Shown: piece after piece, positions 1-58,869 of the stretch
Layout: each line of letters starts with the position of its first letter
Position numbering within the stretch: the stretch's first letter is position 1
Sequence record: NC_020077.1
Length of the DNA: 64,000 nt
Strand: one strand, 5' to 3'
Notes under the pieces: generated by a model
Databases searched by the model: none
Told to the model about the DNA's origin: nothing
The model's input: the letters and a program-made list of their open reading frames with translations, nothing else
Program-made: the position numbers and the translations under genes

Positions 1-1130
1 CTACCTTTTTCTTAGTCCTGCTATCCTCTTACGTTATACCACCCCTTTTTACGTAAATTTTACGTTTTCCCCTTATTTTGTATTAATAAAGTTTTTGGAA
101 AAATATTTCAAAGACAAATTTTATTTCAATTTTGATCAAAATTCGAATTGACGTGCCGACATTTTCATTTTTTTATACTTCTTCTTTTAAAATTTGGATT
201 AAAAGGAAAAACCTAACGTTAATTTAGGTAAATTTAGAGAAATTGTATTATTAATATTTCACTGAATTTAATTCTCGATTTCATGAGTGATTTCATAAAG
301 TATCTAATATACGATATTATTTCTATTCCTAATAAAAGTTTTTATGATATCAACTTTATATATTCATTTTGAATTTATATATTATCAATACGCTTTTCCT
401 ATTTTTTTATCAATACCTATAGTTTTTTGAATTCAAATAATAAAATTTTTGTGACATATAGTTATTTTCATAAATAATGATATATAGTTATTATTGAAAA
501 TAAGAATATCAATTATAAAAAGTTTTCATGATAATTATTATATCTATTTGATTTTGTAATTAATGATGATATCATTATTTCTAAAAATAGTTGATATAAT
601 AATTTTTATATTTAATTTTTTAAGTGAATAAGTTATAAAATTGTTTTCAAAAATTTTTACATTTTGTTTTTATAGTAATTATTATATCTAGTTTTTATTA
701 TAAATATATATAATTATGATATTATAATTTTTATAATAATTATTTTTTATTGTAAATATGATAATCATGAAATTAACTGATTTGAAAATATATCTCATTT
801 ATAATAAAAAATTCAAATTATATAATTTGAGTGAAATTGAAATTAAAATATGTATAAATGATAAAATTGAATTTTTATAATATCGATATTAAATTTTTTA
901 TCTTAACTTATATGAAAAAGTTTATATCAACTTAAATATGAAAATTCAATTTTCATATTTCAGATTATCAATATAGTTTCAATTTCACATATATTAAATA
1001 AATTCAAAGGTATAAATGTTATCAGATAAGTTTATACTTTTGTATTTATGTTTAATCATATCATTATCATGATATAAATAGTTTATAATATCACTTATTT
1101 TATAATGATAAATAAAAACTCGAAATTCCT
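1..1130. other. Very AT-rich non-coding region, candidate replication origin
   Basis: No ORF in the track; long A/T runs; perfect 16-bp palindrome AATTTTGATCAAAATT at 128-143; precedes about 35 kb of co-oriented plus-strand genes. Origin role is inference. Confidence 0.4.
1063..1121 (+). repeat. 59-bp upstream repeat, copy 1
   Basis: ATTATCATGATATAAATAGTTTATAATATCACTTATTTTATAATGATAAATAAAAACTC; recurs at 2388, 3450 and 4430. Confidence 0.9.
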
Positions 1131-1184: not shown

Positions 1185-1208
1185 TTTCACGATGATAATA
1201 CCGTAAAT
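1185..1208 (+). promoter_or_regulatory. Class I operator palindrome, copy 1 (consensus TTTTACGG-N8-CCGTAAAA)
   Basis: TTTCACGA-TGATAATA-CCGTAAAT; TATA box TTTAAATA at 1222, 13 nt downstream. Confidence 0.8.
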
Positions 1209-1263
1209 GATTAGAAAAAGATTTAAATATCCCTTTTCATAAAAGATATATTAGGAGTAAAAT

Positions 1264-1749
1264 ATGGCCGCACCCGAATTAGAAAACCCCGCCCAGAATA
1301 ATGCGGGGGAAAATTCGAATGAAGTAAATCTTGAAGAAATAATAAAAATAATATACGAAATGCGTAAAATCAGGGAGACGCTAGAACAATTAAAGCAAGA
1401 AGATCTTAATAGCGTTAAAAAACTAATTGTAAAAATTGATAATCAAGTAAAAAAATTAAAACAATTAATTGATGAGCGTGATGATTTACCAGTCATGAAA
1501 ATGGATATTAGCAGTTTAGCTAATTTAACGCAAACTTTAGTTAATAAAATTGTTAATCAAGAAATTAAAATAGAAACTTTATTTTTATTAATTACAGATT
1601 TAGTAAAATTAGTAACTGAAATAAAAACTAAACTAGAAATTAAATACAATATCGATATGAGCGCGGAAGAGATATACAAACTAGCAAGAGATATAGCATA
1701 CGACGTGGATGATTTTATATATTTCTTATATTCTTATTTAAATAATTAA
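1264..1749 (+). CDS. Hypothetical coiled-coil protein with shared N-terminal leader
   Basis: 161 aa; GGAG RBS; heptad-like L/I/K/E pattern; leader MAAPELENPAQNNAG. Confidence 0.75.
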   Translation: MAAPELENPAQNNAGENSNEVNLEEIIKIIYEMRKIRETLEQLKQEDLNSVKKLIVKIDNQVKKLKQLIDERDDLPVMKMDISSLANLTQTLVNKIVNQEIKIETLFLLITDLVKLVTEIKTKLEIKYNIDMSAEEIYKLARDIAYDVDDFIYFLYSYLNN

Positions 1750-1750
1750 A

Positions 1751-1803
1751 CTTTTTTTTTATTTTTGTTTTATACTTTTTCTAAACTTTTTATTATGTTA
1801 TTT
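1751..1803 (+). terminator. T-rich terminator-like repeat, also at about 2984-3041
   Basis: TTTTATTTTTGTTTTATACTTTTTCTAAACTTTTTATT follows both ORF1264 and ORF2589. Confidence 0.6.
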
Positions 1804-1825
1804 TAATTTTATTATGTTATTATAA

Positions 1826-2300
1826 TGTAATGCCGCCCGGCCATTATATCATTATTATATATTGTAATTTTGCCGCAGGCCCATCGCCGCATTTTACATT
1901 ATTATTATATTATACGGGCCCGCCGCCCCGCCATTATTCATTATATAATATTATAATTGCCGCCCCCGCCGCCTATAATTCATTATAATAATATATAATA
2001 ATGAATATGCCGCCGCCTAATCATTATTATAATGTAATGCTGGCCCGCCGCATTTAACATATATTATAATATAATAATGAATATGCCGCAGGCCGGCCCA
2101 TTATTCATTATTATATTATAATTGCCGCAGGCCTTTATCATTATTATAATAATGCCGCCGCCGGCCTGCCGCCGCATTAATCATTATATTATAATAATAA
2201 AATGTATAACTAATATTCATTATTATATATTATATATTGAATATGCCGCCGCGCCTATGCCGCAGGCCCGCCGCCGCCCTAATTACATTATTATAATATA
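1826..2300 (+). repeat. AT/GC mosaic satellite, block 1
   Basis: About 10 GC-rich islands (GCCGC, GCCGCAGGCC) separated by nearly pure A/T spacers such as CATTATTATAAT. Confidence 0.85.
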
Positions 2301-2387
2301 ATGAATAACTAATCTACAATATTCATTATATCAATTATAAAATTACATATATACACTTAATTCTTTTACTTATACTTTTTGTATAAT

Positions 2388-2446
2388 ATTATCATGATAT
2401 AAATAGTTTATAATATCACTTATTCTATAATGATAAATAAAAACTC
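2388..2446 (+). repeat. 59-bp upstream repeat, copy 2
   Basis: One mismatch to copy 1. Confidence 0.9.
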
Positions 2447-2509
2447 AAATCTAGTATTGATTTGAATTCCCTTAATTCTTTTAATTTACGCTATTGATAA
2501 TCACGTAAA

Positions 2510-2533
2510 CTTTACGGTGATAATACCGTTAAT
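2510..2533 (+). promoter_or_regulatory. Class I operator, copy 2
   Basis: CTTTACGG-TGATAATA-CCGTTAAT; TTTAAATA at 2547. Confidence 0.85.
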
Positions 2534-2588
2534 CATTAACAAAAGCTTTAAATACCCCTTTTCATAAATAGGTATTTAGGGGTAAAAA

Positions 2589-2981
2589 ATGGCCGCACAA
2601 CCCTTAACTCAAATCCCCGCGTCAAATGCGGGGGTAAAAGTTGATGAATTTTTTGATGAAAAAGAATTAATTAAAATCGCGAGCAGATTAGGGCCTGTAC
2701 AGAAAAAAGTACTAAAAGCACTAGCGCAGAGCGGCGGGAAAATGATGATGCAACATGACTTTAGGACCTGGGGGCAAAAAACTATAGCAGGCATCGTGGG
2801 CGGCGTAAATGCGGAATACCGCGCCTTAAACACGAGAAAACTATGCGAAGCGCTGGAGAGGAAGGGGCTAGTGACAATAACGATTGAAAAATGCCCTAAC
2901 CACCCTAAATATAATAAAAAATTTGTATATTTAACACCAAAAGGATATAAAATAGTAGAAATAATTTCTCAAAACGAATAA
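2589..2981 (+). CDS. Winged helix-turn-helix (MarR-like) protein with shared leader
   Basis: LGPVQKKVLKAL ... LCEALERKGLV ... FVYLTPKG pattern is typical of wHTH proteins. Confidence 0.7.
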   Translation: MAAQPLTQIPASNAGVKVDEFFDEKELIKIASRLGPVQKKVLKALAQSGGKMMMQHDFRTWGQKTIAGIVGGVNAEYRALNTRKLCEALERKGLVTITIEKCPNHPKYNKKFVYLTPKGYKIVEIISQNE

Positions 2982-3044
2982 AGTTTTTTTTTTAATTTTA
3001 TTTTTGTTTTATACTTTTTCTAAACTTTTTATTTTGTTATTATA

Positions 3045-3330
3045 CTTATGCCGCCGGCCGCCTTTATCATTATTATATTATAATATAATGATAATGGCCG
3101 CGCCCCCGCCGCCGGCCTGCCGCCGCACTTTACATTATATATAATATGCCGCCGGCCTTTATCATTATTATTTATTATATATAATGTATAACTAATATTC
3201 ATCATTATTATAATATGCCGCAGGCCCGCCGCCGCCCTAATTACATTATTATAATAATATATGCCGCAGGCCGGCATTTAATTATTATAATATATGCCGC
3301 GCCTATGCCGCCATCGCCGCACTTAACATT
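3045..3330 (+). repeat. AT/GC mosaic satellite, block 2
   Basis: Shares blocks with block 1, e.g. ATGCCGCAGGCCCGCCGCCGCCCTAATTACATTATTATAAT and AATGTATAACTAATATTCAT. Confidence 0.85.
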
Positions 3331-3449
3331 ATTATAATGAATATAATAATTAATAATTAATATACATTATATATTATATTTTATAAATATGATAAATACG
3401 CGTTTTACCCCCTAATACTTATACTTTTGTAAATTACTTTATGCATATC

Positions 3450-3508
3450 ATTATCATGATATAAATAGTTTATAACTACATTTATTCTATAATGATAAAT
3501 AAAAACTC
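3450..3508 (+). repeat. 59-bp upstream repeat, copy 3
   Basis: About 4 mismatches to copy 2. Confidence 0.9.
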
Positions 3509-3581
3509 AAATCTAGTATTGATTTGAATTCCCTTAACTATTTCAATTCACTCTATTGATTCATTTCCTTAACTACGTAAA

Positions 3582-3605
3582 TTTTACGGTAATAATGCCG
3601 TAAAA
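3582..3605 (+). promoter_or_regulatory. Class I operator, copy 3 (perfect arms)
   Basis: TTTTACGG-TAATAATG-CCGTAAAA; TTTAAATA at 3619. Confidence 0.9.
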
Positions 3606-3662
3606 GTTAAACAAAAGATTTAAATACCTCTTTTTACTAAAATTATACTTGAGGGTTAAGAA

Positions 3663-4103
3663 ATGGCCGCACCCCTTAACCCAACCCCCGCGGCAAATGC
3701 GGGGGATAAAATTGAAAAAATAAAACAAATCGCAAAAATAATATATCCATATATATATACTAGCGATAATGAATTTAGCGAAACGGATGCAGAAGATTTA
3801 GAAAGAGAGTTACAATATTTACCAAAAATTATAAACTTATTGGAATGGGCATTAAAGAATGTAAATAAGGTCGAAATAAGCGCAAGTGATGAGTTAAAGT
3901 TTTACGATAAAAAAACGGGCTATGCATTGTATATAACGTTAGCTAAAGGGCGCGGAGCGCAAACGGAAGTAGTAGTTTACCCTGACGCAAATACGATATA
4001 CGTTTTAGTATTTAAAGCGCCCGTATTGAAAATATTGAAAAGGGCTAAAAAGGCACTAGAGGATGCGCTAAAAAGATATACAAAAGCGCAACAAATCTTA
4101 TAA
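3663..4103 (+). CDS. Hypothetical protein with shared leader
   Basis: 146 aa; GAGGG RBS; leader MAAPLNPTPAANAG. Confidence 0.75.
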   Translation: MAAPLNPTPAANAGDKIEKIKQIAKIIYPYIYTSDNEFSETDAEDLERELQYLPKIINLLEWALKNVNKVEISASDELKFYDKKTGYALYITLAKGRGAQTEVVVYPDANTIYVLVFKAPVLKILKRAKKALEDALKRYTKAQQIL

Positions 4104-4124
4104 GATATAACATTTTTTTATTTA

Positions 4125-4350
4125 ATATATGCCGCAGGCCGCGGCATAAACAAACAAATAGTTATAAAAATACCGCCGCTTGCGGCCCGGCGGCGGGCGG
4201 GTTAACAAAAACAAATAATTGATAAACAAATACCGCCCGCCGGCTTATTCTTTTATTTATTAGTTATATAATATTATTATCCCATTTTTTAATGCGCTTT
4301 TATCCCCCATTTTTTATATACTTTAATTATGAATATGCCGCAGGCCGCCC
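4125..4350 (+). repeat. AT/GC mosaic satellite, block 3 (degenerate)
   Basis: AATATGCCGCAGGCC twice; GC hairpin CCGCCG-N9-CGGCGG. Confidence 0.7.
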
Positions 4351-4429
4351 TTTACATTGTATAATATAATGAATAATGCGCTTAATCCCCCGTTTTACTT
4401 ATACTTTTGTATTTAAATTTAAGTATAAC

Positions 4430-4488
4430 GTTATACTGATATAATCACTTTATAACTACATTTATTTTATAATGATTAATAAAAACTC
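4430..4488 (+). repeat. 59-bp upstream repeat, copy 4 (degenerate)
   Basis: 3' half TTTATAACTACATTTATTTTATAATGATTAATAAAAACTC is conserved. Confidence 0.8.
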
Positions 4489-4550
4489 AAAACTACTATT
4501 GGCCAAATCGCCCTTAACTATTTCAATTAGTATATTGATAATCACGTAAA

Positions 4551-4574
4551 TTTCACGGGGATAATGCCGTAAAA
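4551..4574 (+). promoter_or_regulatory. Class I operator, copy 4
   Basis: TTTCACGG-GGATAATG-CCGTAAAA; TTTAAATA at 4588. Confidence 0.85.
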
Positions 4575-4628
4575 AAGGACAGAAAGCTTTAAATACTTCT
4601 TTTAACAAAAGTATATTTGTGGGTAAAA

Positions 4629-5564
4629 ATGTCACAACCCCTAAACCAAACCCCTGCCCAAATGGAGGGGGAAATTAAAAAACAACACATAAAAATATAC
4701 GAGTTTACAAAACAATTGAAAGGGCTAGTAATTGAAAGAGTAAAGTCAAAGCTAGGAGTTATTATTAATGATAATACAGAAGAAATTAATGAATTAATAG
4801 ATATTAATACTGAAGAACTAACGGACACTATAACTAAGTACATAGTACTATTACAAGATCACGTGGAGGATTACGAGACCTGGAGATGGGTTGAGCCAGT
4901 GGATCACCTATTATATTTATCTCAAATGAAGGCAAAACTTGAAGTAAATACTATATTAAGCAAAAATGAAACGAGAAAGGTAAGGCAGAAATTAGCTAAA
5001 TTAGAAGAAAAGATATATAAAACTATAGGCTTAATATATGCCGTAATTTGTAGTGAGAAAAGCGGCAGATTAAATATAATACAGGAGATAATTAATAATA
5101 ACGTAGAGACACGTTTTAACAACGTTATTAGCGATATTGACGCGTTATTAACCAAGCTAGAAAATGTAAATATAAGTGATGAAGCTACAAAAATGCTTAT
5201 TAATAATATAATTAGCACAGCTAAGCAACTTAAAGAAGAAGTAGTAAAGTTAAGAAGTGAAGGAGTAAAAATAGCAAGTATTAACGAAATAGTACTATTT
5301 ATAAAGAAGCTTAACGAATTATTAGCACAAAGCGCATTAATTTCTACTCTAGCTAATTTGATTTACGTAAAAGATAAACAGGTATATGAGCAGTTATTTG
5401 GGCAGCGAAGTTTACTGAATTCGGCGGACAATGCTTATCACTCTTTATTTAAAGTTTTAAAAGATATTAGTAGCAGTTATATTGAAGGATATGAACATAT
5501 AAAGCAAGCTTGCGCAGATAAAACATACGCAGAATATTACACAACAGTATGCAGTGATGAATGA
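4629..5564 (+). CDS. Hypothetical all-alpha protein with shared leader (start moved to ATG 4629)
   Basis: GTGGGT RBS before the ATG; leader MSQPLNQTPAQMEG. Confidence 0.8.
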   Translation: MSQPLNQTPAQMEGEIKKQHIKIYEFTKQLKGLVIERVKSKLGVIINDNTEEINELIDINTEELTDTITKYIVLLQDHVEDYETWRWVEPVDHLLYLSQMKAKLEVNTILSKNETRKVRQKLAKLEEKIYKTIGLIYAVICSEKSGRLNIIQEIINNNVETRFNNVISDIDALLTKLENVNISDEATKMLINNIISTAKQLKEEVVKLRSEGVKIASINEIVLFIKKLNELLAQSALISTLANLIYVKDKQVYEQLFGQRSLLNSADNAYHSLFKVLKDISSSYIEGYEHIKQACADKTYAEYYTTVCSDE

Positions 5565-5923
5565 TGAAAGAAATGAAAAAAGAAGTAAAACTACTTAAAA
5601 AATTAGATAAACAAGCATTTAAGATAGTACTATTATTATATAAAGCAGAGCCTGGTAATCAAAAGCGGCGTGAACTATTGTCGCACTATTATAACGCGCA
5701 TTTAGCTGTAATGCATAGTGACGAGCTTATTTGTAAAAAAATATACGATAACTTATTTATTTACAGCGTTCTGGGGAACGTTATAAAAGCGTTAGAAGGG
5801 GCACTATACTATGCTAACGATATACAAAATTATCATGCGGAGATATTAGCAAAAATTCTAAAGGAAATGTTAGACATTTTACAAAAAATACAAACAATAA
5901 AACTAGAGATTATCGCGGAATAA
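5561..5923 (+). CDS. Hypothetical helical protein
   Basis: 120 aa; ATGA overlap with the upstream stop suggests translational coupling. Confidence 0.7.
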   Translation: MMKEMKKEVKLLKKLDKQAFKIVLLLYKAEPGNQKRRELLSHYYNAHLAVMHSDELICKKIYDNLFIYSVLGNVIKALEGALYYANDIQNYHAEILAKILKEMLDILQKIQTIKLEIIAE

Positions 5924-6058
5924 CGCGTTACTTTAGTAGCAGATTTTTACATGCTTATTTTTTACATTCTTATGCTTTTTGATACGAAATTATTTATAAT
6001 CTATTAATATAATACTGACCTTAATTTAGACAGGGGATTTCTGCCCTTAACGCCCTTA

Positions 6059-6082
6059 TTTTACGGCTATATTACCGTAAAA
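6059..6082 (+). promoter_or_regulatory. Class I operator, copy 5 (perfect arms)
   Basis: TTTTACGG-CTATATTA-CCGTAAAA; TTTAAATA at 6096. Confidence 0.9.
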
Positions 6083-6143
6083 ATCGAGAGAAAGCTTTAA
6101 ATATCTCTTTTACTAATATATAATTAGGGGGTGAAAATCAAAA

Positions 6144-6689
6144 ATGATCGAACCTTTACGTGAATTATTTAAACATTTTAAGGAAGAAAGTGAAAAAATA
6201 AGGGAAGAGTTGGCAAGGGAGAGCGAAGAAGTTAACGTACTGATGAAAACTGATGATGAAAAAATTAAAGAAAAAATAACAGAATTATACAATACAATTG
6301 TTACGCAGGACGCATTACAGCCTGGCTTAACTAAGCTGTATGATACAATAATTGATTATGCGAGGCAACTTGACGATAAAAAGGCGTCATTTATACTTAA
6401 CGCGTTTCACAATAAAATTTACATTACGAAAGCAGATATACAAGAAACGCTAAAGGAAATGTATAATGTCGTTAATGGCAAAACGAAAAAGAAGGATAGC
6501 AAAAACGAGTTATTAATGTTGACTATTAACTTGTTTAAACATTATGCGGCGATGAAATCGCTAACGTTAATTTTATGCGACATTAAAGACTTACGCGAGA
6601 GTGAAGCCTGCAGAATTAACGCGGAGAGTAATAATAAGCTAAAGGATAATATACAGTATTTGCTAGATTTATTGCTGCACAAAAGTTAA
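6144..6689 (+). CDS. Helical protein, paralog of ORF6710
   Basis: IKEKITELYN ... TLKEMYNVVNGK ... LTINLFKHY aligns with ORF6710. Confidence 0.8.
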   Translation: MIEPLRELFKHFKEESEKIREELARESEEVNVLMKTDDEKIKEKITELYNTIVTQDALQPGLTKLYDTIIDYARQLDDKKASFILNAFHNKIYITKADIQETLKEMYNVVNGKTKKKDSKNELLMLTINLFKHYAAMKSLTLILCDIKDLRESEACRINAESNNKLKDNIQYLLDLLLHKS

Positions 6690-6709
6690 ATTTAATTAGG
6701 TGGGTCAAA

Positions 6710-7267
6710 ATGTCTGATCCCATAAATCAAATGATTGAATATCTTGAGCAGGAAATAAGAGGAATGCAAGAGAGGCGAAAACAAGAAGAGAAAGAAGAAC
6801 GTAAAAGAATAAGGCAAGAGAGGCAGGAAGAAATTAAAGAAAAAATAACGAAATTGTATAATATAATTGTAAAAGAAGATTTACTAGGAGTCAATTTAAA
6901 TAAGCTGTATAATGTAGTTGAAGACTACGCTAAAGAGATTGATAGTGAGACGGCAAGTAAAGCGTTTATGAATCTGATAGCGGCGATGGAAACTGCGCGA
7001 GAGAATATGCAAAAAACGCTAAAGGAAATGTATGATATTGCGAATGGTAAAAAGAAGAATAGCAAAAATAAACTATTAGTACTAACTATTAACTTGTTTA
7101 AGCAGTATGGCATAATAAGGGCATTATATGATTCCCTGGACCGTTTTAGCAAAATACGCAAAAGTGAGGTTTATAATGATACGGGAGATAAAAGCCTGAG
7201 GACGTTGTTACATATCACACTAAATAGTAGTTTAAAGTTCTTGCTAGAGTTACTAATCGAAAGGTAA
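6710..7267 (+). CDS. Helical protein, paralog of ORF6144
   Basis: IKEKITKLYN ... TLKEMYDIANGK ... LTINLFKQY; GGTGG RBS. Confidence 0.8.
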   Translation: MSDPINQMIEYLEQEIRGMQERRKQEEKEERKRIRQERQEEIKEKITKLYNIIVKEDLLGVNLNKLYNVVEDYAKEIDSETASKAFMNLIAAMETARENMQKTLKEMYDIANGKKKNSKNKLLVLTINLFKQYGIIRALYDSLDRFSKIRKSEVYNDTGDKSLRTLLHITLNSSLKFLLELLIER

Positions 7268-7461
7268 GGAGGTGAGAGAATGGAAGGGGGTTTCAGTCAC
7301 AAATATGTTAACACCTGCTTATGAGGCATTAATTGTGGACTCGGCCCCTTACTTTATGCTTTTTTGGTTCGGTTTCTATATTATGGTTATGTAATTATTC
7401 TTAACTTATTTCCATAATATCTGACGATTTTTAGGAAATGGTTTGTCTTTTTATGACCTTA

Positions 7462-7485
7462 TTTTACGGGGATACTACCGTGAAA
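7462..7485 (+). promoter_or_regulatory. Class I operator, copy 6
   Basis: TTTTACGG-GGATACTA-CCGTGAAA; TTTAAATA at 7499. Confidence 0.85.
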
Positions 7486-7538
7486 AAGGACAGAAAACTT
7501 TAAATACATCTTTTACTAATATTTAATTGTGGGTAAAA

Positions 7539-8492
7539 ATGTCACAACCCCTAAACCAAACCCCCGCTCCACAAGATGCGGGGGATAAATTGGATGAATT
7601 AAAAGAAAAAATAAAAGAATATATAGAAGATTTGGAAGATCTATCACATGAGTACGACCTACCCGATTTCGCTGCTGATGACTTGCGCGCAGAGCTAGAA
7701 TACATAAGTAAAGAAGCAAATAACGCAGATCTGGCAAAAAGCGTTAAAGAAGTAGTAGAATTAATGGCAAATGCGCTAGATGAGCAAGTAGAGAAAGCGC
7801 TAGAGAATGGCAAGGCATTACGGAACTCTTATGATAATAACAAAATTAGCGATATGTTTAAGAGCGCAGTAAAAATTTACGCAAACTTAAAAACAATAAA
7901 TACAATAGTAGAATATCTAAAGCAATATGTTAAGGTATTAGGCATTACGGAGGCAAATTTAGAAAGGTTTACACAAGAGGCTGGAAGCATTATAGCTATA
8001 CTAGCAAATCACATAGCGCAACATGTTAAACTTAGCGAAGACGATGCAAGAGATTTAGAAAACGACCTGATATATTACCACGATCTAGCAGAAAACTGGA
8101 CTGATATTGAGGATGCTCTTGAGGAAATTGAGTATGATTTAGAAAACGACACAGAGTTTAAGCGTGGAACGTATAAGGCCTTGATGAAGGTTTTGAATGC
8201 AATGCGGGAGCACCATGATAAAGGAGTAGGTTATGGGAACGGCGCGGATGAAATAGTATATGACGCATACGATTCGGACGAAGATGAATATAAGCCTGAC
8301 GAAATAGACACGGAAACACTATTACTAAACCTGGCGGAAACTTACGCACACTTTATAGCACTACAAGCACTTTACGACAACATAATGAGCGAGTATATAA
8401 GTAATGAAAAATTAGAAGATGCAACGAAAAAAGCAATAAATAGGGCAAAAGATGCACAAGAAATCATTTTAAGCAGCTATAATAGCAACTAA
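7539..8492 (+). CDS. Acidic helical protein, paralog family with 8718 and 12468 (start moved to ATG 7539)
   Basis: Leader MSQPLNQTPAPQDAG; motifs AVKIYANL and LAETYAHFIALQALYD. Confidence 0.85.
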   Translation: MSQPLNQTPAPQDAGDKLDELKEKIKEYIEDLEDLSHEYDLPDFAADDLRAELEYISKEANNADLAKSVKEVVELMANALDEQVEKALENGKALRNSYDNNKISDMFKSAVKIYANLKTINTIVEYLKQYVKVLGITEANLERFTQEAGSIIAILANHIAQHVKLSEDDARDLENDLIYYHDLAENWTDIEDALEEIEYDLENDTEFKRGTYKALMKVLNAMREHHDKGVGYGNGADEIVYDAYDSDEDEYKPDEIDTETLLLNLAETYAHFIALQALYDNIMSEYISNEKLEDATKKAINRAKDAQEIILSSYNSN

Positions 8493-8636
8493 ACGTTTTT
8501 TCTTTTTTAGTACCCTTTTTAAAGTTTTTATTGTTAATATTATAACGGCCTACTACTTAACATATCATTATTTTTAAATTAGGGCCATGATAGTTTACGG
8601 TTTTTAGCTAAGGGATTCTGGCCTTTAACGCCCTTA

Positions 8637-8660
8637 TTTTACGGGGATACTGCCGTTAAA
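8637..8660 (+). promoter_or_regulatory. Class I operator, copy 7
   Basis: TTTTACGG-GGATACTG-CCGTTAAA; TTTAAATA at 8674. Confidence 0.85.
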
Positions 8661-8717
8661 AATGAGAGAAAACTTTAAATACCTCTTTTACCTATAGTTA
8701 TATTGAGGGTGAAAAAA

Positions 8718-9617
8718 ATGTCTCAACCCTTAAATCAAACCCCTGCCCCAGCCGCGGGGGCAAATCCAGATAAATTAAGAGAAAAAATAGGAAAATATAT
8801 AAAAGATTTAGAAGATCTGAAGCTGGGTTATGATATAAACGATATACAAGAAGAGATAGAAGAAAGTTACAGTATAACGAAGGGCGTTAAAGAGGCACTA
8901 AAAGTAACATATGTTATCTTAACGGACTACTATAATGACGCCAAGGAAAAAAGCAAGTTGCTAAGTGATGCGTATAATAAAAATGCAATTAAAAGCATGT
9001 TTGATAATGCTATAGAGCTTTATGCAGATTTAGCAGCAACTAATGCATTATTAAGATTAATGCGCTCGTTTAAGATAGAGCCCGAACCGACGCTCACAAC
9101 GCCCTTATTTATAGATTTTACTAGTAAGGCCAAAGACACAGTAATACTATTAATAGGCAGGTACGTAAAGGACGTTAAAAAAGATGATCGGAAAACAGTA
9201 ATTAATAAAATAACTGAAGAGCTAAGCTGGACTATTTCGTATCAAAACAAACTCGAAAGTGACTTCAAAGAATATGAAGAAGAATTTGAAGAGAAAGATG
9301 ATATATCAGCAGGAGAATACAAGGTTCTAAAGAGAGCGCTAAAGTTAATAAAATATTATTACTTGTCTGGAATAAGACTCATAAAAGAAACTAGAGCGAT
9401 GATAAAGCGAGATGGCAAAAATGTTAACATGAGAAAAATAGCCTGGAAATTGACAGAAACGTATGCCACGATGACTATACCATTGGCGCTATACGATATT
9501 TTATGTAGCGACAAATACGACATATGCTATAAATGGTGTGATTATGCCTTGCTATTCCCTACCAAGGATGTTAAAGATGCGATAGAGGTGATTAAGGAGA
9601 ATGCGCTAGGAGACTAA
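8718..9617 (+). CDS. Helical protein, paralog family with 7539 and 12468 (start moved to ATG 8718)
   Basis: Leader MSQPLNQTPAPAAG; motifs AIELYADL and LTETYATMTIPLALYDILC. Confidence 0.85.
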   Translation: MSQPLNQTPAPAAGANPDKLREKIGKYIKDLEDLKLGYDINDIQEEIEESYSITKGVKEALKVTYVILTDYYNDAKEKSKLLSDAYNKNAIKSMFDNAIELYADLAATNALLRLMRSFKIEPEPTLTTPLFIDFTSKAKDTVILLIGRYVKDVKKDDRKTVINKITEELSWTISYQNKLESDFKEYEEEFEEKDDISAGEYKVLKRALKLIKYYYLSGIRLIKETRAMIKRDGKNVNMRKIAWKLTETYATMTIPLALYDILCSDKYDICYKWCDYALLFPTKDVKDAIEVIKENALGD

Positions 9618-12386: not shown

Positions 12387-12431
12387 TTTTACGTTTTTGG
12401 CTATGTAGCTCATGGTAGAAAGTTTTATAAG
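12387..12431 (+). promoter_or_regulatory. Class II promoter TTTTACGT-N21-TAGAAAGTTTTATAAG
   Basis: The exact 16-mer is also at 16009, 20980, 22767 and 26545; variants at 58497 and 58832. Confidence 0.85.
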
Positions 12432-18558: not shown

Positions 18559-19770
18559 ATGGCATCTATCGAGTTCATTATCCCTGAAACATTATTAGAT
18601 AAAGTAAAGGAAGAGGCAAAACGATTTTATGTTAGTGACAAACTTCTGATGAAGGCTGCTATTATTGCATTTATTGAAAATTCTACTGATGCTATAAAAC
18701 CATTACCACTTAATTATAATAAAAAAGAAGAAGAGTTGAAACTTATTCGCTTAGACTTACCAGAAGATATTGCGCAAAAGGTTCATCTTTACAGCAAGAT
18801 AAAAGGATTTCCGATTCGAAGGATCATTAGTAGTATGGTAGATAACTTCCTTAATCTTAATGATGAACGGAAAAAGTTCTATATAGATGAATTAAAAACA
18901 ATACTACCTAGCCTTAAAGTTGGTGCTTGGCGTATAATAAAACTGAAAGAAGCTTTAGCTTCAGGAAATCTTGATTCGCTAATTCAAGTAAGCTTTAAGT
19001 GTAATAAAGAGTTATACGTACTGCTTAAGGACGAGGCATTGAGAAAACATATAATGATAAATGTACTTGTAAGGCAGGTTGTTGATGATTTTGTGCAAAA
19101 GTATGGTGATAATCATGAGGTAATAAAAAAGATGCATAAAGTTGCTAATCACCTCTTTTATGGAAAGATTAACGATAGGGCTCTCGATGTAGAGTTGTCC
19201 GCACGTGTCTTACTGCAATTGGAAAAAATTTCGAGACAGACGCTAGTTTCTAAAAACGATATTATTCGCCTTGCGATTATGAGTCATTTGAATTTACTGA
19301 ACGAGAGCGTCCTTGAACGGCCAATTTTTATAAAAAACGATCTACCACAACAAAATAATAAAGACAACCAGGCACAGACAGATAGTTTTATTAATATACT
19401 GTTGCCAAATAAACTTTACAATTTATTAAAGAGATATGTAATGCCTAACTACGAAGCCAATAAGGAAAGAGAGATTAAGTCTGTAGTCAGTAATGTTGTG
19501 ACAGAAGTAATAACACAGTGGGCAAAAGAGCGTTTTTCCGAAAGCGGCGATGTTGAAACTTACGTAGTATGGCAAATAATTTTGGGCGATTTAAAAATGA
19601 GCTTTTACCCTAGCCTAAAAAGAGGCACAATAGTAAAGAAGCAAGATATCCTAGATGCGATGAAGAATATAAAATATGTATTAGATGAAACAAGGTTATT
19701 TAAAACCTTTAAGGAACGCGGTTATCTAGAGGAGATCGATAATGATAATGTTAAGATTCTACTTCTGTGA
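18559..19770 (+). CDS. Five-RHH protein with C-terminal winged-helix-like domain
   Basis: Four RHH units, an extended fifth (FINILLPNKLYNLLKRYV), and a C-terminus ending FKERGYLEEIDNDNVKILLL. Confidence 0.8.
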   Translation: MASIEFIIPETLLDKVKEEAKRFYVSDKLLMKAAIIAFIENSTDAIKPLPLNYNKKEEELKLIRLDLPEDIAQKVHLYSKIKGFPIRRIISSMVDNFLNLNDERKKFYIDELKTILPSLKVGAWRIIKLKEALASGNLDSLIQVSFKCNKELYVLLKDEALRKHIMINVLVRQVVDDFVQKYGDNHEVIKKMHKVANHLFYGKINDRALDVELSARVLLQLEKISRQTLVSKNDIIRLAIMSHLNLLNESVLERPIFIKNDLPQQNNKDNQAQTDSFINILLPNKLYNLLKRYVMPNYEANKEREIKSVVSNVVTEVITQWAKERFSESGDVETYVVWQIILGDLKMSFYPSLKRGTIVKKQDILDAMKNIKYVLDETRLFKTFKERGYLEEIDNDNVKILLL

Positions 19771-58390: not shown

Positions 58391-58534
58391 ACTTTCATTT
58401 TAGATTAAGCAGTTAAAAATATTCTTTCTGTAAAATTGGAGAAGTAAAGGGAACTAAAAGAGGTCAAAAGTAACGTGTTTATGACGTTGCTGATTATAGA
58501 AAGTTTTAAATATTAGAAAAACAGAACCTAAAAT

Positions 58535-58687
58535 ATGCCATTCAAATGTCCGGTCTGCGGTGAATTCGGAACGCTATATGTTAAAAAAGTAGAAAAAAGA
58601 AGATGCCATTATTATATAAATCATTATAATAAAAAGCACTGCTACATAGGGCCAGTAAATGATTGTAGTGGTTTTGTAGAGATTTAG
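58535..58687 (+). CDS. 50-aa zinc-finger mini-paralog of ORF58870 (missed by the ORF track)
   Basis: MPFKCPVCGEFGTLYVKKVEKRRCHYYINHYNKKHCYIGPVNDCSGFVEI*; own promoter at 58497. Confidence 0.65.
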   Translation: MPFKCPVCGEFGTLYVKKVEKRRCHYYINHYNKKHCYIGPVNDCSGFVEI

Positions 58688-58869
58688 AGAAGCATTCATA
58701 ACTTATGTATACATAAGTAAGGTAAATCTTTTTTTTCCAAAATTACCGCTCTTATCTTCTTTCTATAAAATTGTAGAAACAAAGGGCAGTGAAAGACGTA
58801 AAAAATGACGAGTTCATAACGTTAGTGATTATAGAAAGTTTTAAATACAAGAAAAACAGATCCTAACAT

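Follow-up and report, generated by a model that had tools for sequence, protein, structure and literature searches.

Seven genes at the start of the genome of Sulfolobus virus STSV2 are each preceded by a copy of the same inverted-repeat box, and this raises the question of whether the box is a regulatory site and, if so, which protein reads it. The window analyzed here comprises positions 1–64000 of the STSV2 genome (NC_020077 / JQ287645; genome 76,107 bp), and its first 9 kb are 100% identical to that record. STSV2 is used as a laboratory model; it infects S. islandicus REY15A, makes the cells gigantic and drives CRISPR adaptation. The factors known to regulate genes of archaeal viruses are few. 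A first-pass annotation of the window had proposed seven palindromic operators at an invariant distance from a TATA box, and had suggested an activator that recruits TBP and TFB; this might be a host factor, or the winged-helix protein encoded at 2589 might autoregulate the genes. The reading favored here, as having a somewhat better than even chance of being correct, is that the box is a functional protein site coupled to the promoter, a 24-bp dyad-symmetric upstream element.

The box and its place in the promoter

The box follows the pattern TTTTACGG-N8-CCGTAAAA, which covers 24 nt with 16 specified letters. Its seven copies were all found on the + strand at the positions first listed, together with the transcription factor B recognition element (BRE) and the TATA box of each promoter:

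1185..1208, + strand: box copy 1 (TTTCACGA-N8-CCGTAAAT), 3 mismatches, position weight matrix score 27.6; precedes STSV2_01
2510..2533, + strand: box copy 2 (CTTTACGG-N8-CCGTTAAT), 3 mismatches; precedes STSV2_02, the MarR-like gene
3582..3605, + strand: box copy 3, perfect arms; precedes STSV2_03
4551..4574, + strand: box copy 4, 1 mismatch; precedes STSV2_04
6059..6082, + strand: box copy 5, perfect arms; precedes STSV2_06
7462..7485, + strand: box copy 6, 1 mismatch; precedes STSV2_08
8637..8660, + strand: box copy 7, 1 mismatch; precedes STSV2_09
1215..1229, + strand: purine-rich BRE (module positions 31–37) and TATA box TTTAAATA (module positions 38–45) of copy 1
2540–2554, 3612–3626, 4581–4595, 6089–6103, 7492–7506 and 8667–8681, + strand: BRE and TTTAAATA of copies 2–7

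Each of the seven genes (STSV2_01, 02, 03, 04, 06, 08 and 09) is annotated 'hypothetical protein'. The shared consensus of the first-pass annotation describes five copies well (0–1 mismatch) and overstates those at 1185 and 2510, because each of these has 3 mismatches. The spacing holds throughout: TTTAAATA begins 37 nt after the start of the box in all seven copies, leaving a gap of 13 nt. At up to 2 mismatches the palindrome is matched 5 times, compared with 0.04 expected, and the composite ACGG-N8-CCGT-N17-TTTAAATA 7 times, compared with 0.05 expected; seven matches were reached in 0 of 100 shuffles. The remainder of the 76,107-bp STSV2 genome holds no further copy. In every promoter TTTAAATA stands behind AGAAAG[AC]-like purines, which is the strong core type, TTTAWATA after a purine-rich BRE.

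The position of the box relative to transcription was taken from RNA contigs of four runs of one 2015 study without time resolution. Contig ends cannot prove RNA ends, and contig depth is a poor measure of expression. Two starts were derived in this way:

4619, + strand: inferred transcription start of STSV2_04, a contig 5′ end at TATA start + 31
6127, + strand: inferred transcription start of STSV2_06, where contigs of three runs start, at TATA start + 31

At copy 4 (TATA at 4588) the contigs start at 4619, 4625 and 4625, and at copy 5 (TATA at 6096) at 6127 in each of the three runs. Since contigs start at TATA + 31 in two promoters, the box is upstream DNA and is not transcribed. With these contig-derived starts it lies at about −68 to −45, the BRE at about −38 to −32 and TATA at −31 to −24. 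The box ends 13 nt before TATA and 6 nt before the BRE, the position of an upstream activator site. Contigs of the upstream genes stop short of the boxes; the 200-nt bin before copy 3 has zero depth in all four runs and the next bin is the deepest of the stretch. The deepest contigs in all four runs are those of STSV2_03 (3600–4100), approximately 100–1000 times deeper than those of STSV2_04 and STSV2_06; its product belongs to no recognizable family.

The same architecture is present in six STSV-type sequences: STSV2, the complete genome of STSV1, STSV3 and STSV4 (both as partial records), and two STSV-like contigs from metagenomes. One of these contigs (JAVZKH010000037.1, 8055 bp) has seven box modules and was binned into a 'Candidatus Aenigmatarchaeota' metagenome-assembled genome (MAG); it is probably a mis-binned virus fragment, since it is plainly STSV-like with seven box cassettes. 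The other, a 1.1-kb ENA contig, has one module. In STSV1 box promoters precede ORF1, 2, 4, 6, 9 and 11, and a weaker form is found at ORF5, 7, 10 and 15, with a TTTATAAG-type TATA, and at ORF3, with TTTTTAAG. The ORF3 promoter, a full box followed by 13 nt and TTTTTAAG, lies inside the annotated 5′ end of that gene (STSV1 3739–3830), and the true start is probably an ATG about 90 nt 3′ of the annotated one.

A position-weight scan of the six sequences gave 38 gene-oriented boxes; one weak STSV4 match, which overlaps the upstream flank of a real box, was left out. The gap is 13 nt in 38 of 38. In 37 of them a matched TATA-like octamer follows at that distance, and the 38th is STSV1 ORF3 with its variant octamer. 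The TATA-to-ATG distance in these modules ranges from 37 to 48 nt, and there are zero indels across the 37 nt from box start to TATA, so that indels are tolerated next door but not within the box or the box–TATA interval. Mismatch to consensus, taken over 27 distinct TTTAAATA-type modules, is 14.8% per arm (12.4% without positions 4 and 21), 16.9% in the BRE and 22.7% in the centre of the box, compared with 36% in the spacer, 35% 3′ of TATA and 29–41% upstream; conservation of the arms exceeds that of their flanks 2–3 times. For the family as a whole the consensus reads A-TTTnACGg-nnATAnTA-CCGTwAA. Of the 1230 start/spacer combinations compared within the module, the axis of the box gives the best dyad. 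Positions 4 and 21, both degenerate, occupy mirrored places, and the left arm and the reversed right arm have correlated information profiles (r = 0.69). A search of 2.9 million IMG/VR contigs with the box–TATA pattern, the window's own record being left out, found the architecture in STSV1 only. The element is restricted to the STSV lineage.

Several points weigh against a functional dyad site. With a core of the strong type, the promoter may work without an activator. Contig depths at copies 3 and 5, whose boxes are equally perfect, are two to three orders of magnitude apart. Outside STSV2 the left (distal) arm is less well kept, ACGG becoming AGGG, AGGC or ACGT, and the proximal CCGTwAA is better kept; the well-conserved centre ATAnTA is not symmetric. 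Because of this weaker left arm and non-symmetric centre, the box may be read asymmetrically. Since the modules are paralogues, the conservation counts do not represent independent events, and gene conversion could homogenize the modules. The seven genes may be called early by analogy alone. Finally, protein binding, the sign of regulation and the binder are inferences.

Candidate binders

A host factor captured by the virus would be expected from the first-pass annotation to have a regulon of its own in the Sulfolobales. The scan covered 47 Sulfolobaceae genomes including that of Sulfolobus tengchongensis; S. islandicus M.14.25 and REY15A are not in the set. The S. tengchongensis chromosome was found through a host homologue of the viral DUF5591 gene, and then its family. 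At up to 1 mismatch the palindrome TTTNACGG-N8-CCGTNAAA occurs at 14 sites in the 47 genomes, compared with 13 for the reversed control, and at none in S. tengchongensis; at up to 2 mismatches there are 376 sites compared with 327 in the control, which is no enrichment. By comparison, STSV2 has 5 sites at up to 1 mismatch within 76 kb. Of the 14 best host sites, 13 fall within open frames, 105 to 881 codons long, and TATA follows at 13 nt in none of the 14. With the palindrome at control level, the proposal of a host factor with a host regulon finds no support. No host regulon is detectable for the box, and a host binder, if any, could be one without recognizable sites of its own at this stringency.

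The other candidate of the first-pass annotation is encoded within the set:

2589..2981, + strand: STSV2_02, MarR-like winged-helix protein, in a box-driven cassette

An AlphaFold2 model of STSV2_02 from a 4-sequence alignment has a mean predicted local distance difference test score (pLDDT) of 79.4; the single-sequence fold, with a pLDDT of 38, was not usable. The top 50 Foldseek matches of the model in the PDB are all of MarR type (E values 2e-3 to 1.2e-2, TM scores 0.42–0.53). PHROG 11046, 'transcriptional regulator', matches STSV2_02 weakly (E 2.6e-4); weak matches of this kind are found in two family members. No Pfam family matches STSV2_02 at E up to 0.1, and a PDB sequence profile search gave nothing significant. 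A MarR-type winged-helix fold for STSV2_02 has moderate support from the model. Among 5.8 billion proteins its only relatives are three, all on STSV-like contigs, and all three genes of the family, in STSV2 and two related contigs, stand behind a box promoter. A tblastn search of the complete STSV1 genome and of the records of STSV3 and STSV4 found no homologue, and hhalign showed no relation between the STSV2_02 family and STSV1 ORF2.

MarR dimers bind palindromes of the size of the box. As an alternative to the favored reading, the box might be a feedback operator of the Aca type: a cassette-encoded viral regulator, in STSV2 the MarR-like STSV2_02, would bind it and shut the set down after a first burst. 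The predicted fold, the weak regulator matches and the location of each family gene behind a box promoter are in favor, and the same logic has been put forward for Aca8 and the inverted repeats of SMV2 (Bhoobalan-Chitty et al., 2024; PMC11065993). A regulator of this type would belong to the set and accompany the motif throughout; STSV2_02 is missing from STSV1 and from the records of STSV3 and STSV4, all of which have the box. In addition, the box is clear of the BRE, TATA and start site, where characterized archaeal repressors act (PMC5569661), and the lack of a Pfam MarR match also counts against STSV2_02. A feedback operator is considered unlikely, though it is the main rival of the favored reading. 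STSV2_02 cannot be the general binder, because it has no homologue in STSV1, which keeps the boxes; the box is both older than the STSV2_02 gene and more widely distributed. Autoregulation by the protein at 2589, as first suggested, is not supported for the set as a whole: the protein is MarR-like by fold and lies in a box-driven cassette, but it is absent from STSV1. STSV2_02 may be an accessory feedback regulator.

A binder specific to the virus lineage is more likely than a host factor with its own regulon, and conserved ribbon-helix-helix (RHH) or AbrB-like proteins are candidates. The DNA-binding proteins conserved in both STSV1 and STSV2 comprise the RHH proteins STSV2_17, 22 and 53, the RHH arrays between 17 and 23, and the AbrB/MazE-like STSV2_60. 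When the proteins that the cassettes of STSV2, STSV1 and the MAG contig encode were scanned with Pfam and PHROG, STSV2_02 was the only one with a DNA-binding family, and no informative family was detected for the cargo.

Single arms of the box are found at the same offset in other promoter classes:

12387..12431, + strand: 'class C' promoter of STSV2_12, TTTTACG 37 nt before TTTATAAG, without the right arm
15980 (STSV2_17), 20951 (STSV2_22) and 22738 (STSV2_24), + strand: further class C promoters, TTTTACG exactly 37 nt before TTTATAAG
58468..58512, + strand: promoter with the proximal ACGTT element only (box positions 17–21), 13-nt spacing and TTTAAATA
58803–58847, + strand: twin proximal-element promoter; that of STSV2_73, outside the window, is similar

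Of 32 TTTTACG heptamers genome-wide, eight stand at exactly this 37-nt distance before a TATA box. STSV1 has class C counterparts at 18681 and 20718, one of which is orthologous to the STSV2_22 promoter, and the distal-arm promoters of STSV2_17 and STSV2_22 drive RHH genes. ACGTT occupies box positions 17–21 in the promoters at 58505, 58840 and 74037. The half-sites CGTAAA or CCGTWAA alone are not enriched outside promoters. The single-arm promoters would agree with a protein that recognizes CGTAAA-like half-sites at set positions before the BRE. This support is suggestive and not independent, because these promoters may share ancestry with the cassette promoter.

The twin promoters (58468–58700 and 58803–58850) have AACGT-N7-ACGTT-like boxes in the 24 + 13 + TTTAAATA frame. 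The one at 58468 drives an unannotated 50-aa zinc-ribbon ORF (58535–58687), which is paralogous to the N-terminus of STSV2_55.

Cassette anatomy and other explanations of the repeat

Alignment of the seven STSV2 modules gives two subgroups, copies 1–4 and copies 5–7. Copies 1–4 have about 150 nt of upstream repeat in common and an additional half-site:

3575..3581, + strand, also at 1178, 2503 and 4544: extra half-site ACGTAAA, which abuts the box in copies 1–4 and with the left arm gives CGTAAA-T-TTTACG

Copies 5–7 have another upstream segment in common (..CCCTTAACGCCCTTA), and copy 4 is a mosaic of both subgroups. Conservation common to the two subgroups first appears at the 5′ edge of the box. 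On its 3′ side follow a variable 6-nt stretch, the purine-rich BRE, TATA, a short leader that carries a Shine-Dalgarno sequence, then the ATG and an N-terminal leader common to the copies.

It is improbable that the palindrome is a functionless passenger, riding in a promoter cassette that was duplicated and homogenized by recombination. This would account for a repeat that spans everything between about −11 and the N-terminal codons and extends a further 150 nt upstream in copies 1–4, and for the mosaic copy 4. It would not account for the uneven conservation within modules, where the arms have 15% mismatch and neighboring segments 35–41%, nor for the absence of indels over 37 nt in 38 modules when indels are common just 3′. 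Descent alone leaves the dyad symmetry and the mirrored degeneracy unexplained, and the conservation holds over six diverged viral sequences.

Inverted arms of 8 bp around a conserved asymmetric 8-bp centre resemble the core sites of tyrosine recombinases. The boxes also lie at cassette borders, and the cargo varies between related viruses, as would be expected if a site-specific recombinase swapped cassettes in an integron-like manner. Such core sites have identical central overlaps, but the 8-nt centres of the seven STSV2 boxes comprise six different sequences, so that partner boxes lack an identical overlap for strand exchange. Neither the strict TATA register, which the model does not require, nor the single arms at the same offset in other promoter classes favor this explanation, and a recombination site is judged very improbable.

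That the box forms a terminator or hairpin of the upstream gene, or a divergent promoter through a TATA-like centre (CTATAATA), is scarcely credible: the arms are able to pair and the centre is TATA-like in STSV1 and STSV3, but upstream-gene contigs end before the box, with zero depth just before copy 3 in the four runs, copies 6 and 7 have GGATACTG or GGATACTA at the centre, the fold of copy 1 is no better than that of shuffled sequence, and no Rfam family matches. Hairpin energies of the box are weak, −1 to −8 kcal/mol at 37°C, which indicates recognition of duplex DNA rather than a structural role. A cruciform or hairpin role of the box was ruled out on these energies.

The box array follows an AT-rich region; its counterpart in STSV1 is the repeat and stem-loop region annotated where that record begins. 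The authors of the STSV1 sequence reportedly proposed that region as the replication origin. In STSV2 this putative origin region, at the start of the record, contains TTTTTACGTAAATTTTACG (window 46–66), with three half-sites of the box-arm word, among them a 10-nt perfect palindrome, TTTACGTAAA.

Two further features of the cassettes lie outside the box. A G+C hairpin (CCCCGC..GCGGGG) is found at 1285–1315, 2615–2640, 3690–3712, 4655–4680, 7562–7590 and 8742–8765, at about codons 8–17 in 6 of the 7 cargo ORFs, where it overlaps the shared N-terminal leader (QPLNQTPA..AG); in copy 4 it is CCCCT/AGGGG, an apparent compensatory change. Between the first cassettes only (1800–2300, 3050–3340 and 4130–4370), short GCCGCC-type G+C islands alternate with ATTATA-type A+T runs.

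Mechanism, known systems and meaning

In the favored reading, a dimeric DNA-binding protein of winged-helix or RHH type would bind both arms of the box on duplex DNA and, at its fixed position, would touch or position TFB/TBP. The most likely result would be that initiation is raised or timed at all seven promoters together. The duplicated cassette, consisting of box, 13 nt, BRE, TTTAAATA, leader and N-terminal leader, drives in this reading the accessory genes, predicted to be anti-defense genes, beside the putative origin of STSV-type viruses. A positive, co-ordinating role is favored because of the upstream position and the Sta1-like geometry and distance, though by itself it falls a little short of an even chance. 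The activator first proposed to recruit TBP/TFB gains from this analysis a selected dyad cis-element in register with BRE and TATA and wholly upstream of the BRE, where archaeal activators act.

Virus-specific regulatory consensus sequences have been derived for STSV1 and STSV2 (Bhoobalan-Chitty et al., 2024; PMC11065993). Supplementary Data 1 of that study lists STSV2_01, 02, 03, 04, 06, 08, 09 and 73 as putative anti-defense genes sharing a regulatory sequence. The genes behind the seven boxes are those of this STSV2 list, which adds STSV2_73. The promoter class described there has the same core, TTTAWATA with a purine-rich BRE, and a virus-specific flank common to several single genes. The Aca8 sites and the SMV2 repeats, which overlap the BRE, were read as repressor sites at the core promoter, whereas the STSV box is wholly upstream of the BRE. 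Since the seven-gene set was catalogued in 2024, the box refines known biology. The dyad, its position, the fixed register, the spread to STSV3/STSV4 and a binder are not in the main text of that paper; the STSV2 genome and transcriptome papers may describe the box. What this analysis adds is the anatomy of the box, a test of its conservation, a host scan with a negative outcome, the finding that ORF2589 is not the general binder, and the classes of promoter with a single arm.

The nearest known geometry is that of Sta1, a host Lrs14-type winged-helix activator of SIRV1 promoters, which takes effect under limiting TBP or TFB (Kessler et al., 2006; PMC1635249). Sta1 recognizes a dimer-type 16-bp inverted repeat of 4-N8-4 form about 30 bp before the core promoter; the STSV box has the same geometry, with its centre 29 bp from the TATA centre. 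Its letters differ. The Sta1 consensus ATNT-N8-(A/T)NAT consists of A/T only and is bound weakly (10 uM) (PMC1635249), whereas the STSV box has a G+C core, ACGG-N8-CCGT, at the same spacing. Sta1 also has a second site inside the core promoter, whereas the STSV box is upstream only and has no detected host regulon.

Characterized archaeal repressors overlap the BRE/TATA or the start site, whereas the activators Ptr2 and TFB-RF1 act from upstream (reviewed in PMC5569661). The sites of these two lie upstream of the BRE, like the STSV box, and the proteins recruit TBP or TFB; they serve cellular euryarchaeal regulons. F55 of SSV1 is a small virus-encoded RHH binder with repeated sites at early promoters and at its own promoter (PMC5569661). 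Its sites are tandem direct repeats (ATAGATAG) within or beside promoters, and they repress; the STSV box is inverted and upstream.

A 24-bp site in fixed register at seven strong promoters provides a practical handle on the regulator of a putative anti-defense set. The search for that regulator has been narrowed, there being no detectable host regulon and the neighboring MarR-like gene having been excluded as the general binder. The box could also act as a portable control element in Sulfolobus expression vectors. It is conceivable, if speculative, that the box and the single arms, which stand before the RHH-array operons and other genes, together form the operator code of one conserved, virus-encoded master regulator of the STSV lineage, activating from about −56 through TFB/TBP; examples of candidates are STSV2_17 or STSV2_22, single-chain double-RHH proteins with the distal arm in their own promoters. 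If this is so, the regulator would co-ordinate the whole accessory (anti-defense) cassette array, and, to our knowledge, no upstream-acting activator circuit encoded by an archaeal virus would have been described before it.

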